Part shown: one piece after another, positions 21,209 to 31,767 of the stretch | Layout: the number at the start of each line of letters is the position of its first letter | Numbering within the stretch: position 1 is the stretch's first letter | NCBI GenBank assembly: GCA_020536535.1 | Contig: JAHLWZ010000817.1 | Span: 1 to 64,000, forward strand | Reading direction: 5' to 3' | DNA length: 64,000 bases | DNA from: Pelomyxa schiedti | Taxonomy: Eukaryota; Protista; Evosea | Translations under genes and position numbers: made by a program | The notes under the pieces: generated by a model | Database searches by the model: none | The model's input: only the letters and a program-made list of their open reading frames with translations | Told to the model about the DNA's origin: nothing

Positions 21209-24200
21209 ATGAAACCAGGGGACAGCGACGCCTCAACCTCGAAAGTTGTCGCCCAATCAAATTTTGGAACCACGTCCTCTGCTGCCCAGAAGCACGATTA
21301 TGGGATGGCAACTACCAGCCCCACACCCGCAGCAACACCCACCACCCCAACACCGTCCCATAATCCCGCCAACACCGTAACCCCAGTCTCCACGTCTTAT
21401 GCGGCAACCGGCACGGTCCTCCCTTCTTCGCACCTGCACCTGCACCACCACACCGTCGGGCTTCCCACGCCCCCGTCGATGCCTCTGCCCTCCAAATCCA
21501 CATCTCCCTCCCTCGGCACCGAACTCGCGACCCCGAGCCCCCTGGGCCTGTCCTCGGCCCCCACGTCGTCCTCCCCGCCGTCGTCGTCGCCCATCGCCAC
21601 CCCCTCGCCGACTCCGTCCTACGCGCCCTCCACGGGCTCCTCCTCCTCCTCGTCCACGTCGCCCGGCTCCCCGCGGCGCTTCGGCGGCGGCAACTCCCCG
21701 CCGCTGACCCACTCGACCTCGTTCATCTCGCTCAAGCACGCCGCCCACCGCTTCATCCCCCACAGCGGCGCGGGCGCCAGCAAGGCGGCGTCGCCGGGCT
21801 CCGCGGCGCTGGCGCCCCCGGGGGCCCTGCGGACCAGCGCCAGCGCGGTCATGTCGCCGCCGGGCAGCGGCGCCGGCACGCCCATCTCGCACTCCACGTC
21901 CACGTCCTCCCCCGCGCTGACGGGGGGCGTCCCCCTGTCCCTCTCGTCGCCGTCCTCGCCCTCCTCGCACCACCCCTCGTCCTCGTCGTCTTCGTCATCG
22001 TCGGCCACGTCCACGTCTTCGCCGACCTACTCGTCCATGTCGGCGTGCTCCTCGCCCATGTACGCGTCGTCGCGGGCGGGGCCGGGGGCGGGGAGCGCGA
22101 GCGGGGGCGGGAGCTGCGTTGGGAGCGGGGGGGCCATCGGGAGCGTCGGCAGCGGCGGGAGTGCCACGGTCCTGCGTGACCCTTTTGCCAACTCAGAGTT
22201 GGCCATCAAGGTCTGTCTCGTCTGGTTTGCGTTGTGGTTGTGGTGGCATGATGGCACCTCATACAGATTTGTCTTAAATGCGCACATACACACACCCACT
22301 TTGTTGCTTTTCCCCAAGATACTTTCATCTTCTGACACCTATGCTTAGGAACTGGAGCAAATGCAGGCATCACTTTCGGCGTTCTACTCTTCAGTTAGGA
22401 AGCAACTTGCAAGCCAACAAGGTTTCTTTTTACACCTCATTTCAATAGGAGATTAAATTTGTTGGGTTTTTTCCCCTCCAGCTATGACAGAGGAGGTGGC
22501 TGCCACTGTTCAGTTCTGGGCAAATATGTGCTCTGATGTATCCAAAACTGAATACTTCCAGCCATCAGAGGACCTAAGTAAAATGATTCATACAACTACT
22601 CCAACTTATTGTTTTCTGTGTACTCAGTTGGTGCCTTTTCTGAAGCTTCGAAAAATTCTAAGAAGTTTTCTCTGTGCTTTCTCCCTCGACTGGTAACTTC
22701 GTTTCCAGTCTATATTAACACTGTTTTCTATTTAGTTCCTTATCAATAAGTCCATAATAGAAAGTATCTTTGAGTGAACTGTCTGCCACTGAAATGTTTT
22801 CTCTCAATTGTATGAAAGAGCACAAGGTTTCACTCCTAACCCTTACTGTCAAATAATGTGAAGCAGCACATATGGCAAGCTTTGCAGTCAAATAAGGAGG
22901 GTTATGAATCAGCCACTATCAAAATGCAATCGCAGTCCAGAAACAAAAGTATTGACCTTGCAAGACTTGCAGAAGTATCACCCAGTTGTGTAAAAAGTCT
23001 TCCTACCCTCTTTTAGATTCAGCAAGAGCGCGATACGAAATTTGCCTTGTGTACGAGGTATTCACAGGAAGCAATAAGTGAAAGTGCGACTTTGTCAAAC
23101 AGGTTACCTTCTTGCACAAGCTGCCCTTGTCATAATTGTGCACAGAACGTTGGCTACAGCTTTATTACAAATCTGCAATACATTCGATGGCTTTATGGAA
23201 TCACAAAAAAGGTCTTAATGCTTGTAAGAGTTTTTTTTCACTCCCTGAGTTCATTTAGATCAATGCAATTTTTGGAAGACCTGAAGCTTGATGTGCAGCA
23301 GTGGAGGCAGTTAGCTTCTTCGGTATCCCTTTTCTTTTTTTCTTCTTTTCTCTCCAATACCTCTTCAACAGAAATTGGCTGAGGGGATAACACAACGCCG
23401 TCGCAGTGCCTCATTCAGTGCAGTCTCTTCACCTATTCCACCTTTTCAAGAGACTTTTACTCCAACTACAAGACTTTCAGATGAAAAATGGCGGAGACTG
23501 GTTGTAAGAGAGAAAGAGCATTGCGAAGGATTAAAATTCGTTACTGATGTATGACACTTAGCCATTTCTTTTGTTAAAGCCTGGATAAGGTTTATTTAGC
23601 CAATATTATGAAAGCAGGATCACTGTTTAGTGAAATTACCCGAGAGCAGGTTGCTCTTATATTCTGCAATATTCCACAAATTTCGGAGATGCACTCGCAA
23701 CTCCTTGCCGCCATGCAGTCAGCAAGCTCAACTACTAGCCCTTTTGTGGAAATAATGGTTTTTCCTTCAAAAAAAAAAACAACCTGGGTTTTTAAATTCT
23801 ACTTTCTAGTCCACACTGTTCCCTCTGTATTCAAGATACTTTGCAAATTTCGTTAATTCACAACACACTCTAGAAACCTGTAAAACAGGGTCCAAAGTCT
23901 TCTCTAGATTATTAAAGGTATGGCTGTTCCAACATTTTGACGATGCCACCTTTCTCTAGGAATGCCAAAAGGAGCATCCCAATATAAAATCAGACCTGGC
24001 TGGTTTACTTGCATCTCCTCTGAACCGTCTCCGTGAATACACACTATTTTTTGAGGTACTATTAAGTTTGCACTTTCCACAATGATATAACAGTGCCTAG
24101 GTTCTTGCAGCTGAGTCAAAGCAATCCGGCTACGAGCCAGATTTACAATGTTTTGAGGCTCTACAAACATTAAATGAATTCGCTGAAACAGCTAAATTCA

Positions 24201-26649
24201 CTCATCAGGTTCCTTCTTTCTGAAGAAAGAAGTGACTAACTACCTTACAGACTGCTCTTGTTTCCAGCAAAGTAGTTGGATGGAACGACTCTTTCCCAGT
24301 CCCACCAGGAAGACGATTCTTGATGCAAGCTGTGGTTTCTTCAAAGGAGTCAAACTCTCTAGTTGCCCTACTGTTCAGGTTTTTTCTCTAAAAACTTTCC
24401 AACAAGGACTCACTTTTCCAAGTGATGCTTTAGTCATAGCAAAGCAAACCTCTGCCAAATCTCATAAACTTCAGCACTTTACAACAATGAATTTACAAAC
24501 GATGATTATCAAACTTATTCCGGACATTTCTCCTAGTACACCTACCTTCAATTCCATAAGTTCCACCTAATTTTTTGAAGCCATGAAGTTTTGCTTTCAA
24601 GTGATAGACCATAATACAGCGTTGGGTTTGAGTGCAGGGACTGATGCCGTATATCAGGAAATTGCCAATCAATCTGCCAAAGCGAAACAACATGCTCAAC
24701 AAAAAAAAGGTGTTCCCATAGCCCTATACTCCTGGTTGTTTTACGCCTCCATAGTTTTTGGTGTTCCACTAAAGGATCTCATGGCAACAAAACGAGAAGA
24801 AGGGCACAACGTTCCGTCTATCGTTGAAACCACTGTTACATACCTTCACACATTCCTTGATCAAAATGGTATAGCACCACTTTTTACTGTTCTAAGCAGC
24901 AAAACACAGCTTGTCGGGTGGAGGGCATATTTCGGTTGAGTGGGAATCAAGAAGAAACAGACAATCTTCTGACAAAGATTGAAAGTGAAGGTGTGAGGCA
25001 AATCCCTGCTGTCATTCCTTATATTTTTTACAGAAAAGATGATAAGCTTTTCTGGACTCGACCCACACACTGTTGCCGGTGTACTGAAGAGATTTGTTCG
25101 CAACTTACCTGATCCTTTAATAACACAAGAATTGCAACCAGACTTCTTGAAATGTGGCGGTATATTCTTTGCTCCTTGGGAAGTGTACCACTAACGTCGC
25201 TCCAGAAGAACATGATACAGAAATTCGAGTCCGGATACTTAAGGATCTTGTCACAAGACTTCCAAAACACCACAAATACCTTCTGCAGTACTTAACACAT
25301 TTTCTGTGGGAAATTACACTCTATGAGCAAGCAAAGATGAATGCCAGAAACTTGTCTATTGTCTTTGCTCCACACTTTCTAAAAAATCAGGTGATTTTTA
25401 CTGTGACAAGAAATAACTACTTTTCTCAGACCTAAACGCAGTCCAAATAACAAACCAAAACAGGACTTCACTGTTCCTAGTTTAAACACTTTTTCCGTGA
25501 TCCAAGCATCCATTGAAAATTATGCAGACATATTCCTTGTTTGTAAGGAGCCTTGTTTTCCCGCCCAACGAATTTGCAGGAAATCGAAGCACAAAGAGAA
25601 GAAGAACTCAATAGCGTTCCCCCAAGTCCCGCAAACACTTTCACCAAGTAGATTTCGAAACAATCCAGGAAAATCTAACTTTCACAGAACTCTCACAACC
25701 AACACTGAGGCCCCTACCCCAGTGGAAATTTTCCCCAGTTATGAAGCTCAAGATAATAATGGTATCCATGTTTCACCTACAGCAAAAAAATTGACATGTA
25801 CACAAAAACAAAACCTTAGGCATAACCATTTCACTACGGGAGATTGTCAAACAAGGTACACTTTTTTTGAAAGGAAGAAGAACCTGGAACACAAGATGGT
25901 TTGTCCTCAAAAAGAATTACATGTACTACTTCAAAACTTCCAAGGTAAAAAAAACAAAAAAGCACAAGTCAACACAACCCAACAAGCAAATGTAACTAAC
26001 TTTCTTATGCCCACAGGACCACACCGCCAAGGGAGTTATCAACCTACAGGTTTGCGATATAGGCCCCCTTGAAGGCAGCAAACGGAAATATGGCTTTGTT
26101 GTATCCACGCCGTCCCAGAAGTACCTCATAGCGGCGACCAACGAAGCCGAGTACCGGGCGTGGATCACGGCCATCAACGAATGCAAGTCACCCGGCACGC
26201 CCTCGTCGCCCGCGAACCCAAAGCACCCACCCTCACCAACCCTCACGCCCCCACTCACCCCAATCTCCGGAACCACAAGCAACCTCAGAAGCCTGCATTC
26301 CGAGGACGAAAGCGAGGGGGCACTGCACAGCGGGGGCTCACTGCAGCAGCCCATGTGTTCATCACCATCACTGCCACCTTCTCCCACAACCAACCCCAGG
26401 CACCTAATCATATCACCCTTCCCAGGTTCAGCTTCAGCTTCAACACAAACAGCCCCATCAACACCCAAGGCCGCAGGCACAACTACATTGCAATCATCAA
26501 CACCAGCAACAAACAGTCAGGCCAGTCCCACATCACATACACAAGTAGTAGGGACACCTCCGAGCACAGGGACAGGGGGGGCCACGGCCTCACACTCCCC
26601 TGATACCTATTACACAAACACCAAAGTGACCACCTCACATGGCAACTGA
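21209..26649 (+). CDS. Dual Rho regulator: Ser/Pro-rich N-terminus, DH (RhoGEF), PH, RhoGAP, second PH (BCR/ABR-like), multi-exon
   Basis: DH: LIFCNIPQISEMHSQLL..LAGLLASPLNRLREY. GAP: IVFGVPLKDLM..VPSIVETTVTYL..EGIFRLSG..DPHTVAGVLKRFVRNLPDPLI..KMNARNLSIVFAPHFL. C-terminal PH: YGFVVSTPSQKYLIAATNEAEYRAWITAINEC. Confidence 0.85.
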
Positions 26650-26754: not shown

Positions 26755-29700
26755 TCATATTCTACATTTGCGGAAAACAGCGGGTCCTCTGGCATAATAC
26801 TCGCTCTTTGACACGGCAAAGCGGGAACTGAATTCAGTTTGTCTTGAGGCAATTGAGGCCCCTGGGGGAAACTTAAATGAATTGAATGGGGAATTTTGAT
26901 ATTTCAAACCTATCCACACTAAATCGCCCCTGTTCGGTGGTGCTTTGACGTTCACAACAATATTAGGGAAACATGGTTGCAAATCCCGACGCAGTCTCTC
27001 TTGGAAACCAGGAATGAGAGAGGTTCCGCCAGATAGAACTACATTGGAGAGTATCTTTTGTTCTGGAAAAAAATTGTAAGCATGGGGGAAAAAAACAAAT
27101 GATGCCCATACGGTCAACTGGATGACAGTCGAAAAGCAGATGATAAATGTTGTTGGCGTATTCAGCTTGCTGGTAAAACCACTCTGGTTCAGTTCTGTGG
27201 TAATTTCCAAGTGACAACACCTTTCCATCAGGGAGGGCAAAACAAGGTTGTTGGGGATCTATGCTGGCTGGGTCTAGTGTAAAATACTTTTCTTTGCAAA
27301 ACTCAAAGGCTTGATAAAATGCCGGAGTTGTTGGAAATATTAAATTCACAGCTCGTGAGAAATTGTTAATGAAGAAGTTGGTGACATCCCAGCCACCAAA
27401 ATCCCAATGCAAGGATTTGCCTGGAACGGGAGCTGGTAGAAATTAGTAAAGCAAATAGAGGGAGAAAAGCTAACTTTCGATTGCAGGGATTATGTTGGTA
27501 CTACCAAAGCCCAGTTCGAGAACCAACCCGTTTGAGGTGCCCAAAGCCCACAAGGGTAATAAACTTTCTTCCAGAAAAGAGAGCGATGACATATTGTACT
27601 CTTCAAAGACAGTCTGAGCAATCCAATTCACTCCCCCATCTTGATCAATGTGTGGTGGTACAGTGACTATTACACCAGTGCTTTCACTATTGAAGGAGCG
27701 ACATTTACAGAATTCTCCTATGTGATGAGACCAGATAGTTGGCCTAGCAGGCCTTGGCCCTGCACTACCAACTTAAGGAATGACAGTTACTATAATTGAT
27801 GAAGGTAGGAGGGAATCTACCGCAGTTCCGTGGATCTAAAATTGACTTAATGCGAAGTGACGGATAGTCACAGCTATTGGTGCCCACGCGGGTGGTACTT
27901 GAGCCACTGTCAATGATAATGAAATGTGGATATCCACCTGTAGAGGGGATAGAACTCGTCAACCCAGGAGACACTTGAGGCATCCTGTGGGCAGTCACAA
28001 CTGGAGAAGTGGGAGGGAGTACAGGTGGACCCTTCCTTTGGATACAGGGAAGTGTTGTGTTTTTTGGAGGTACATTCGCGCTGAGAATTGGAGGTTGTTG
28101 TGGAACCAATGGAAGGGGCATTTGGGGAGGGGTTGTAACTGTTGGAGGGGGTTTAGAGGCTCTCAGGTTAGAGCCAACAAGCCCTACTAGCGCAGGTGTA
28201 GGGAGTGGGCAATGAGGGATTGGAGGGTAAGGAGATTGTTGTGGTAGGAAACGATAACCATTTACTGCTGCGGGAATTGGCAGGTTCAAGGGTGGAGGGT
28301 GGGGTTTTGTCTGTGGTGGGGTAACGAACTTCGGTGGAGGAGGTTGTGGGAGTTGATACGTGTTAGGGGGCAGGTTTTTTACAGGAAAACTCTCTTCTTG
28401 GACCGGTTGGAGATTTTGCAATGTGGGAACTCTCGAGACACAAGAAAGCGGAGGATGAGGCAAAGGAGTTGTAGGAGCTTGTGTCGCTTTAGTCCCACAA
28501 AGTTGTGCATTACTTGGGGACCTATTGTGTGAGGTCGGTAAAGGTAATTGCTGGGGGTCTGTCCTTGGAATATCACGCTCTGGCGCAAGGGGCAAACACG
28601 GAGGAGGGTCATGAAGCGGTGAGAGTGGTGTCCGAGATAGTGGTGCCTTAAATGAGTTAGAAGAGCTACTTGGTTGAGTGTCAGTATTCTGAGATTCGAC
28701 AGACTCTCCGAATAGTTGGGCAGATAGGGAGAGAGGTTGATGCCCTGTATCGTGGTGCGGCAAAGTGGGAGTTAAGGGCTCCCCCTCATGTGTATCTTGA
28801 CTATCTCTTTCATAGAAGTTGACGTTTTCTCTGTCCACCTGTAAATATGTCTCGGCTATTTTCACAGGTCCCGTTGTCATTTTGTCTTGCCATTCATCTT
28901 TCTCTGTCCTTCTCGCTGTTTGGTGGGTCTCATGCAAATCTAAGCGACTTTCCAATGAGTGAGAGTCACGGCTCTCTTTTTTCTCTTTTGCACGCTGCAA
29001 ATTGTCTTGGTGTAACACGTCGTTGCTTAGGGAGTTCCATGTTACAGGCTCCAGGCACTTTGAAATGGGCTCTTTAGCTTTCTCCACATGCGAAGAGTTT
29101 GGTGGCGTGCAGGTGACTGGCTGTGGTTTTAGTGTAGTGTGGGTGACTGGCTGTGGCCGCTCCGTACCACACTAAAAGAACAAGTCAGAATCGTAATGTA
29201 GCCAGATACTAGTGACTTACCTTCATGCTTAGTAGAAGACCTGTTTTCCGACATAAGAAGAAAGAAACAGGGGTAATTCTACTAGTAGTGGTGTGCCATA
29301 CCGCGAGCCGTCGCTTCGTCTCCATTTGCTTGCTCAAGTACATCTTCCAGTAAATCTTCGTCGCACCCGCAGAACGACCGCTTCAGGGCGGTAAGTGCCA
29401 AAGCGCGTTTCTGCGAATTCAGCTGGTCGTGCAGCTCCGACATCCTCCTAGCGGTGCTCTCGTTTTCCGAGAGCAAGGTAGCCAGCCTGAGGTCAGTGTC
29501 CTCCTTGGCCCTGAAGCTCTCTTCCCGCGCCTGTTTGAGGGATTCGGCCCTAGCGCGGTGCAAGTCGTCGTCTTCTATAAGGCGCATTGCTGCCGACATA
29601 GACGTAGGTCTGAGGGTTGCGTGGTTCTGCGGCGCGGGGGGAGTGCCACTAATAGTATTGTTGCTGTTGTTGGTGTTGGTGTTGGTGTTGTTGGTGGCGG

Positions 29701-29905
29701 TGCTGCATGGCCCGGATGCGAGTTTAACTCCTGGTCTATTTATACTATTTATAGGCGGGCGATTTGTTTGTGGAGTCGGCGGTGGCGGGGCACCGGGCTC
29801 CCCGTCGAAGTGGCGCTGTATGTCGAGCCTCACCGAGGCCGTCAGCGACCCCAAGTAGTTGAACAGGTCGTCTTCCTCGTCCTCTACATAGTCGCCGTCG
29901 TCCAT
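26755..29905 (-). CDS. Fusion protein: two UIM-like motifs + CUE-like domain + long Pro-rich linker + divergent actin fold
   Basis: The N-terminal exon (EDDDLHRARAESL; EDTDLRLATLLSENE; LKRSFCGCDEDLLEDVLEQANGDEATAR) splices through introns 29241-29301 and 29172-29220 in frame into ORF 27765-29087. Actin motifs follow: IIIDSGSSTTRVG; IAQTVFEEYNMSSLSF..GLVLELGFGSTNIIP; DFGGWDVTNF; FALPDGKVLSLG; NVVLSGGTSLIPGFQERL..APPNRGDLVWIGASI. Confidence 0.8.
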
Positions 29906-30394: not shown

Positions 30395-31476
30395 ATGTCG
30401 GGACAATTAAGCGAGCCTATCGACCGAAAGTGGGTGCTGTGGCTTCCAGAGACCGCCTCCCGTTTAATCTTGGCTCGGATCGAGCCGTCATCTTCTTCGT
30501 CGTCACCCTCGCCGCGATCATCATCATCATTTCAACACCAACCACAACATCCACAATCACGCCCAACTTCACCTTCGACTCGGTCGCATCAACACAAACA
30601 GCAACAGCAACAACAACAAGACCAAAGCCACGCGTTTACAGCGTCGCTCACATACTCGCCCGAAGATGAAGCGGCTTCATCATTGGAGGGAGATACTGTA
30701 CTAATAGACGACGACGATGATAATGATGTCGACGACGACTGCCAGGATTGCGAGGAGAGAGAGCAGGCGGCGACTGTGGGCGGGGGTGGGTGCTCAGAGG
30801 CAGAGTTGATGGCTATAGCCGAACTGTTCAGCGGCGATGATGGCGGTGTCTCGCTTTCGTGGTACCTATCCAGGATTGTGAGATACAGCGGGATTGGCTA
30901 CAGCTCCGTTGTCGCCTCCATCGCCCTTTTGGATAGGGCTTTGTCTTTGAATCCTACCTTCAAACTCTCTCACTCCAACGTGTACAGAATGGTCCTTGCA
31001 AGGTATAGTATTCCCTTTCGTTTGATGTTAACGAGATATGGGGGGGGGGAGTTTGGGGCAATGTCTTTGTAGGGGGAAATACTTACTTTCTCTCCAGCAC
31101 TGTAGTTGCCACAAAATTCTATGATGACGATTACTACCCGAACAGCTACTATGCCAAGTATGGACAACTGGAGCCTTCATTCGACTTACTTACACTTCTC
31201 AGTGTTGGAGGAGTGAACCCAGAAGAAATGAACCAACTAGAACTGGGGTTCCTTGCACTTGTAAACTTTGATTGTCTCATTAAACGCGATATATATGATT
31301 GCTATGCAGCAGCTGTGTGCTGCACGGACCCTCCGGATTTACCTTCTCCTCCTCCAGGTACAAAGAAAGCCCTACCCGGTCTACATTATCCCACCAAACA
31401 AAGAAACAAACATAGGAGAGGAGAAAAATTCCGAATTGCGCGGGACAGAGAGTCTTATAAACATCGAGGCCACTAA
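30395..31476 (+). CDS. Cyclin of the PHO80/PCL (cyclin U/P) family
   Basis: SLSWYLSRIVRYS..SVVASIALLDR..LSHSNVYRMVLA / STVVATKFYDDDYYPNSYYAK / VGGVNPEEMNQLELGFLALVNF. Confidence 0.9.
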
Positions 31477-31767
31477 CACGGCAATCGGCTTAGTGCAATC
31501 CCACTAATGCACATGTACACACTACAACCACAATCACCCTCACAAACGACGGCTATATTCCTATTTTAAATAGAAAAGGCACCTAGTTTTGACACACTCG
31601 TTTGTTGACAACGGTTCAAAAGTCAAACCCAAAACCCGCTCCCTCAAAACCAACGCAGGCAAATGCTGCCAAAAAGGTTACAGTGTTTCCCTGCGCATCT
31701 CTCCGGCAAATCAAAAGGAGATCTCAAGATCATAAAAACCAAATAAAACAAGAGCAAGAACACCGAA

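Follow-up and report, generated by a model that had tools for sequence, protein, structure and literature searches.

A candidate ubiquitin-reader-type module joined to a degenerate actin-fold domain in a predicted gene of Pelomyxa schiedti

The gene considered in this study occupies positions 29905 to 26755 of the minus strand in the first 64 kb of contig JAHLWZ010000817.1, from assembly GCA_020536535.1 of Pelomyxa schiedti. I will refer to this 64-kb stretch as the window; its coordinates are the same as those of the GenBank record. The reading I favor, to which I would give a probability of roughly 60%, is that seven exons encode one lineage-specific adaptor of 950 residues, with an N-terminus of the ubiquitin-reader type, a proline-rich tether, and a degenerate actin-fold head. 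Two UIM-like motifs would lie 24 residues apart on one long helix that runs straight into a CUE-like bundle, a micro-exon of 20 nucleotides (nt) would complete the last helix of that bundle with the canonical di-leucine, and a proline-rich linker of about 410 residues would join this N-terminal module to the degenerate actin-fold domain. The likely task of the module would be to bind cargo that carries ubiquitin or chains of it. The actin-fold domain keeps the ATPase core and most of the residues that contact nucleotide, and has lost nearly all of subdomain 2 and part of the plug. Unable to form canonical filaments, it would act as a nucleotide-binding head for protein interactions, in the manner of the orphan and nuclear actin-related proteins (Arps).

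The seven-exon model translates to a protein identical to GenBank KAH3756703.1 (950 residues), and so the fused architecture, including the micro-exon, is already part of the public annotation. That annotation was produced by Augustus, refined with PASA/EVM and single-cell transcriptomes, for a genome averaging 7.43 introns per gene (PMC8887013). The product name given in the record, "Actin alpha skeletal muscle [Pelomyxa schiedti]", fits poorly, since the protein is 950 residues long and its actin-like domain is only about 21–26% identical to actins. Judged by the sequence, the name is an automatic transfer, misleading in that it hides the architecture. The six introns are 42 to 61 nt long and all but one are in phase 1, with exons 4, 5, and 6 of the symmetric 1-1 type.

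A preliminary description of the region had proposed that an apparently separate open reading frame of 207 codons (29282..29905, minus strand) is in fact the first part of this gene. All of the sequence features it relied on were found where it had placed them on the minus strand: the 207-codon frame, a GTATGG donor at 29301, an intron of 61 nt, an exon of 20 nt, an intron of 49 nt, and, far downstream, the altered actin motif ELGFGST. Reading the minus strand also bears out the claim that the frame passes from the 20-nt exon into a proline-rich open reading frame of 440 codons (27765–29087) and onward into the actin-like exons. The layout proposed there, a single gene with UIM-UIM-CUE-like, proline-rich, and actin-fold parts in that order, is backed by the public model, by RNA contigs over the 3′ half, by the matches to the UIM motif, and by the predicted bundle.

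The RNA contigs considered here were assembled from the single-cell RNA-seq of the P. schiedti genome study, and they show that the gene is transcribed. Exon 3 (27821..29171) is covered over 27821–28292, 28523–28846, and 28614–28878. It encodes the linker (residues 209–620) and the first approximately 38 residues of the actin fold, with the phosphate-1 loop IIIDSGSSTTRVG. Intron 3 (27772..27820; 49 nt) is spliced out of a 735-nt contig of run X2, which spans 27509–28292 and contains the joint 27771/27821. Because this contig crosses the intron, a single spliced RNA carries both the proline-rich arm and the actin domain. Intron 4 (27433..27474; 42 nt) is likewise removed, as shown by a run X1 contig with the joint 27432/27475. 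The acceptors of exon 4 (starting at 27771) and exon 5 (starting at 27432) were set from these contigs. Intron 5 (27063..27111; 49 nt) and intron 6 (26862..26909; 48 nt) are predicted, and both are in the GenBank model.

Exon 1 (29302..29905), as read from its open reading frame, begins with the ATG at 29905 and supplies residues 1–201 plus one base. It contains an acidic N-terminus, a low-complexity tract of asparagine and threonine, the two UIM-like motifs, and the first two helices of the CUE-like bundle. One RNA contig (run X1, depth 2) covers 29348–29498 of this exon. At position 29420 the same contig has T where the genome has C (plus strand), which may be an allele, an error, or the result of editing.

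The passage from exon 1 to exon 3 is predicted to run through the micro-exon. The donor GTATGG at 29301 lies five codons ahead of the stop that ends the 207-codon frame. Intron 1 (29241..29301; 61 nt, phase 1) runs from this donor through a pyrimidine tract to CAG; it is predicted, and present in the GenBank model. The micro-exon (29221..29240) encodes (G)LLLSMK, the second half of the third CUE-like helix, including the di-leucine L204-L205. Intron 2 (29172..29220; 49 nt, phase 0), also predicted, has near-ideal signals: GTAAGT, a branch-like CTGAC, and TTTTAG, with the open frame beginning exactly at the acceptor. Just inside exon 3, residues 213–231 (29105–29160) contain a short direct peptide repeat, RPQPVTHTTL/KPQPVTCTPP.

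Taken together, the splice signals, the open frame, and the spacing of the CUE di-leucine suggest that the micro-exon is used, and I consider a fused transcript very probable. One of the stronger arguments comes from the 97 codons between 29171 and 28881, which are free of both stops and ATGs in the frame of the model, while each of the other frames contains four stops (P ~0.01). Codon usage over the same interval favors the model frame. The coding frame must accordingly be reached by splicing from a point upstream of 29172. Splicing of the micro-exon also yields Leu-Leu at the canonical CUE spacing, while reading through intron 1 gives Ala-His and then a stop. The ability to hold the frame open was discarded as evidence for the micro-exon, because 479 other two-intron GT-AG models stay open as well. 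A mis-assembly or scaffolding chimera was ruled out, the whole stretch being contiguous in a contig from the DNA run.

There are also observations that speak against one transcript, and with them for an arrangement of two. No RNA contig covers 28879–29347, so that neither junction of the micro-exon is crossed. An RNA-based check across 29905–27700 had been proposed in the preliminary description, and what the contigs deliver is the splicing of introns 3 and 4 and the joining of the arm to the actin domain, but not the micro-exon junctions. There are six single-intron models in addition to the 479 with two introns, and with hundreds of GT-AG combinations able to keep the frame open, agreement of frame counts for little. 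The micro-exon itself contains an in-frame ATG at 29226, with A at −3 and the strong GTAAGT donor after it, that could begin a separate downstream protein (MKCGTERPQ...). Finally, in one RNA contig from run X3 the genomic match stops at 28878 and the SMART template-switch oligonucleotide follows (loose end CCATGTACTCTGCGTTGATAC). This cDNA 5′ end coincides with the first in-frame ATG of exon 3 (28880–28878), and it could be either an internal start of transcription or a point where reverse transcriptase fell off.

If there were two genes or two transcripts, intron 1 would be retained and a UIM/CUE-like protein of 207 residues would end at 29282, while a separate proline-rich actin-like protein would start at the ATG at 29226 or internally near 28878; on this view the gene predictor would have merged two units into the annotated fusion. 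I consider this unlikely. The gap between the upstream stop and the downstream ATG would be just 55 nt, as compared to 181–261 nt between the coding sequences of neighbors on the same strand. The donor of intron 1 is a good one and is followed by a pyrimidine tract and AG, and retention of the intron would put Ala-His at the site of the CUE di-leucine, where splicing puts Leu-Leu at exactly the canonical spacing. A start at 28878 would leave the 97 stop-free codons upstream unexplained (P ~0.01), and the model reached by Augustus, PASA, and EVM is fused. An exact look-up of the 207-residue product as a stand-alone protein found no record.

Returning to the single fused protein, the case for an N-terminus of the ubiquitin-reader type begins with the two UIM-like motifs. 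The UIM consensus is Ac-Ac-Ac-x-hydrophobic-x-x-Ala-hydrophobic-x-x-Ser-x-x-Ac, where Ac is an acidic residue (PMC5361193). The first motif, EDDDLHRARAESLKQ (residues 111–125; 29531..29575), and the second, EDTDLRLATLLSENE (residues 135–149; 29459..29503), both keep the acidic run, the leucine, and the invariant alanine and serine, at identical consensus positions 24 residues apart. The hydrophobic position after the invariant alanine is not kept, being occupied by arginine or threonine. The core pattern is rare: in 58,383 residues of stop-free stretches from all six frames of the window, it matches twice, and both matches are these motifs. The best sequence match in the PDB is the tandem UIM peptide of AIRAPL/ZFAND2B (4xkh; expectation value (E) 0.021), which aligns over both motifs, its UIM1 with the first, and has the same Ala-to-Ala spacing of 24 residues. 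AIRAPL differs from the P. schiedti protein in being a zinc-finger protein associated with the proteasome, with tandem UIMs that are selective for K48 chains (PMC5361193), and in lacking the arginine or threonine that the P. schiedti motifs have in place of the consensus hydrophobic residue. Both motifs fall on a predicted helix with a predicted local distance difference test score (pLDDT) above 90.

The second element is a predicted three-helix bundle of the CUE/UBA type, formed by residues ~165–208 (29221..29413) and interrupted at the level of the gene by intron 1. AlphaFold2, given the single sequence of residues 100–218, returned a model with a mean pLDDT of 89 (approximately 86–93 in the bundle region) and with helices at 105–177, 183–192, and 197–207. 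The first helix of the bundle is thus the end of the same helix of about 70 residues that carries the UIM-like motifs. When the model was compared by Foldseek with the PDB, almost all of the top matches were UBA or CUE domains (the UBA of Ede1 with probability 0.96, the CUE of Tollip, and CUE1 of SMARCAD1). VIA-align superposed the bundle on the CUE of gp78 with Z 7.8 (53/53 residues, 1.8 Å) and on CUE1 of SMARCAD1 with Z 7.7 and 7.3 (1.1 Å over 48/48 residues). In an Atlas search by shape, four of ten rows carried Pfam CUE, including Vps9-CUE proteins.

The bundle resembles the CUE domains of gp78/AMFR, SMARCAD1, Tollip, Vps9, and Cue2 in superposing over the full length of a CUE domain (Z 7.3–7.8, root-mean-square deviation 1.1–1.8 Å), and it further resembles Cue2-1 and SMARCAD1 CUE1 in the spacing of a central phenylalanine and a di-leucine. 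Two sequence elements, MFP and a di-leucine, are conserved in CUE domains, and ubiquitin binding requires both (PMC6688830). In the P. schiedti bundle, L204 and L205, encoded by the micro-exon and lying in helix 3, come 26 and 27 residues after F178, the same spacing from phenylalanine to the leucine pair as in Cue2-1 (F20; L46, L47) and SMARCAD1 CUE1 (F169; L195, L196) (PMC6688830). The likeness ends at MFP (hFP/haP), at the close of helix 1, which here reads S177-F178-C179, with the aromatic alone kept. The bundle differs from those CUE domains also in that it has no Pfam CUE match and that its first helix extends from one bearing UIM-like motifs.

Several of these results weigh against ubiquitin as the ligand. 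Pfam gives no match to UIM, CUE, or UBA even at E ≤ 10, whether the protein is searched as exon-wise pieces or as sub-ranges, with or without the residues of the micro-exon. The Pfam UIM model is very short, and the filters of HMMER drop weak matches. The preliminary description had named a lack of UIM and CUE profile support as grounds for abandoning its proposal, and in Pfam there is none. The only weak matches returned in these Pfam searches were CCDC50_N (E 0.04–0.05) and NBP1. The Foldseek E values for the small bundle are weak (0.2–3), and Z values below 8 in VIA lie in a middling range common for helical bundles, so that the structural matches give support at the level of fold and not proof. 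Comparison of the CUE-like piece with PDB sequences by phmmer found nothing meaningful, and a feature search of the ESM Atlas gave one weak UBA lead (0.78) for a 99-residue piece and none for residues 160–215 or 100–215. With SFC in place of MFP, binding of ubiquitin by the CUE-like domain is uncertain. Moreover, CUE folds can bind other partners, as CUE1 of SMARCAD1 binds KAP1 (PMC6688830).

It is conceivable, then, that there is one fusion gene but that its N-terminal module does not read ubiquitin at all. The charged helix and UBA-like bundle would serve some other protein contact, or dimerization, and the likeness to UIMs would simply come with an acidic helix. The absence of Pfam matches fits such a module, as do the SFC, the arginine or threonine after the invariant alanine, and fold-search scores of the sort that helical bundles often give; and SMARCAD1 CUE1, which binds KAP1 and not ubiquitin, is among the best structural matches. 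I nonetheless find this explanation doubtful, since two independent matches to the UIM core, at the spacing of AIRAPL, directly adjoin a fold of the CUE/UBA type, the pattern occurs nowhere else in the window, and the central phenylalanine and the di-leucine are kept at the canonical CUE spacing. The proposal of a UIM-UIM-CUE module thus stands so far as the consensus, the AIRAPL match, and the predicted fold are concerned, but the lack of Pfam support and the degenerate MFP tell against it.

Ahead of the module, the acidic N-terminus contains EDDLFNYL (residues 11–18; 29852..29875), found by regular expression, in which acidic residues are followed by F-x-x-L, fitting the pattern of a LIR/AIM (Atg8-interacting) motif. 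The combination of this candidate motif with modules of the ubiquitin-binding type recalls selective autophagy receptors such as Cue5/Tollip, a resemblance I would treat only as a lead.

After the module comes the linker, residues 209–620, which is 19% proline and contains 18 PxxP motifs, three PPP runs, and one PPPP run. The linker, of about 410 residues, is probably disordered, and Pfam finds no match in it. SH3 domains or profilin might conceivably bind it.

At the C-terminal end lies the actin-fold domain. Pfam Actin (PF00022), for which the curated cut-off is 27 bits, matches the full protein with 110.5 bits (E 9.7e-32) and residues 615–950 with 117.6 bits. The 60 best sequence matches in the PDB, by phmmer, are all conventional actins (best E 1.7e-27). 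An AlphaFold2 model of the domain, made from an alignment of nine sequences, is matched by Foldseek to actins with E ~1e-22, TM scores of 0.64–0.71, and identities of 21–26%. The pLDDT of this model, just 67, is a point on the other side. From the sequence and the model, the domain is a clear member of the actin family.

The domain is spread over the end of exon 3 and four further exons. Exon 4 (27475..27771) encodes subdomain 1, what is left of subdomain 2, and the phosphate-2 loop with LELGFGST, and by itself matches Pfam Actin (E 1e-07) and aligns with actin and Arp2 in the PDB. Exon 5 (27112..27432) encodes shortened subdomains 3 and 4, an LPDG motif, and a shortened plug loop. Exon 6 (26910..27062) encodes the adenosine-site segment LSGGTSLIPG (Pfam Actin, E 4.8e-11; PDB actins down to 3.9e-08). 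Exon 7 (26755..26861) encodes the C-terminal actin helices, ending in ...FRKCRI, with the stop at 26755–26757.

The alignments to PDB actins show D11, G13, S14, G156, G158, K213-E214-K215, G301-G302-T303, and the C-terminal helices to be kept, along with K18 in the form of arginine. Equally evident is what has been removed. Where actin has residues 37–84, which make up the D-loop and the greater part of subdomain 2, this domain has 16 residues, a loss of approximately 32; the hydrophobic plug loop is shorter by seven residues and subdomain 4 by nine. The actin fold had been described beforehand as complete but divergent. It clearly belongs to the family (Pfam Actin, E 9.7e-32), but it is not complete, since these residues of subdomain 2, plug, and subdomain 4 (~32, 7, and 9) are missing.

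Substitutions add to the deletions. In the phmmer alignment to actin, the catalytic and phosphate-2 positions show Q137E, D154E, D157F, and H161N, and the target cleft shows Y143W, L346A, L349Q, T351E, and M355F. By the features expected of a conventional polymerizing actin (an intact subdomain 2 with its D-loop, the plug, and Q137, D154, D157, and H161), the domain falls short. Deletions and substitutions together make canonical polymerization, and canonical ligands of the cleft, unlikely. Nucleotide binding may persist, and the earlier suggestion that the altered phosphate-2 motif ELGFGST could change how nucleotide is handled is a reasonable one, given the four substitutions.

One could suppose to the contrary that the actin-like domain does work with filaments, capping or decorating their ends or co-assembling with them, and so tethers ubiquitinated cargo or membranes, with the proline-rich arm recruiting SH3 proteins or profilin. 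Conventional actins are nearer in sequence than any Arp of solved structure, the C-terminal helices and the GGT segment are retained along with D11, G13, S14, G156, G158, and K213-E214, the linker has its 18 PxxP motifs, and a convergent neighbor encodes a RhoGEF/RhoGAP/PH protein (context only). Such a role would nevertheless have to be played by a domain only about 21–26% identical to actin, without the D-loop and most of subdomain 2, with a plug seven residues shorter, and with a cleft changed at five positions (L346A, L349Q, T351E, M355F, and Y143W), while a single run of four prolines is far from the tracts of formin FH1 domains. I consider it doubtful. The connection that the preliminary description drew with the actin system, and with SH3 and profilin partners, finds no support here: with the D-loop and plug reduced, the cleft residues changed, and one PPPP run in the linker, it amounts to conjecture.

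In the collections searched, no orthologue of the protein was found, though these may omit transcriptomes of Archamoebae, and for this reason there is no evidence from conservation for any part of it, a further point on the negative side. An exhaustive phmmer search with exon 4 against 1.84 billion representatives recovered KAH3756703.1 itself, the other matches having E ≥ 1e-6; the remainder were spurious BNR-repeat proteins or distant members of the actin family about 33% identical, none with a related architecture. When homologues were sought by word index, with the actin domain, the N-terminal module, or the whole protein as query, nothing came up beyond KAH3756703.1, a single fish protein, and two actins from Lokiarchaeota. 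Exon 5, scanned against JGI metagenomes, likewise turned up no relative.

It is rare for a protein of the actin family to carry accessory domains. A literature search for members with UIM or CUE domains found none, and the combination of UIM/CUE-like modules with an actin fold appears in no other protein or paper searched, the gene model itself being already in GenBank. Filactin (Fia) of Dictyostelium is similar in total length, at approximately 940–950 residues, and has Ist1-like and filamin-type parts in its extension, of which Pfam finds neither in the P. schiedti protein. The actin domain of filactin has been called 'extremely homologous' to actin, as compared to the identity of about 21–26% here, and no sequence relationship was detected. 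The candidacy of the P. schiedti protein as a filactin orthologue was dismissed, as neither domains nor identity fit.

The classes of Arps follow their decreasing similarity to actin, and a further group takes in the orphans (PMC2441452). Like the orphan and nuclear Arps (Arp4–Arp9 and orphan), the P. schiedti domain has a divergent actin fold with insertions or deletions, is not expected to polymerize, and may be an interaction module. It differs in having been placed in no Arp class and in having conventional actins as its best PDB matches. No Arp is known to have UIM or CUE domains. The actin fusions of primate POTE proteins offer a parallel in architecture, with an actin fold C-terminal to an unrelated targeting or scaffold region, but with other partner domains. 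Endocytic and autophagy adaptors (Eps15/Ede1, epsin, Tollip/Cue5) share with the P. schiedti protein the use of UIM, UBA, or CUE modules and long disordered proline-rich regions, and the UBA of Ede1 and CUE of Tollip are among the top fold matches of the bundle. None of these adaptors, however, has an actin fold, and Pfam finds no EH, ENTH, or C2 domain in the P. schiedti protein.

If the N-terminal module does bind ubiquitin, then in this early-branching anaerobic amoebozoan the ubiquitin code would be coupled physically and directly, within one protein, to a module with an actin fold. The protein would further illustrate how an actin fold can occur in nature without subdomain 2 and would be, if splicing is as modelled, a case in which a 20-nt micro-exon bears functionally critical residues, the CUE di-leucine. 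A broader conjecture is that degenerate actin-fold heads serve P. schiedti as a shared building block, joined in each case to another targeting domain. The partner here would be a UIM-UIM-CUE ubiquitin reader, and the protein would be the ubiquitin-specific member of a modular system coupling marked cargo to the ends of actin filaments or to an actin-binding machine, with the N-terminal F-x-x-L perhaps adding a link to Atg8, as in an adaptor resembling autophagy receptors. I regard this as a long shot.

The genes to either side lie on the plus strand. The convergent neighbor (22794–26649) encodes a protein of 954 residues annotated as RhoGEF, RhoGAP, and PH, and its coding sequence ends 105 nt from the stop of the actin-like gene. 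The divergent upstream neighbor (30395–31507) encodes a cyclin-domain protein of 308 residues. The 5′ intergenic region that it shares with the actin-like gene is 489 nt in length and contains long runs of poly-A and poly-T.

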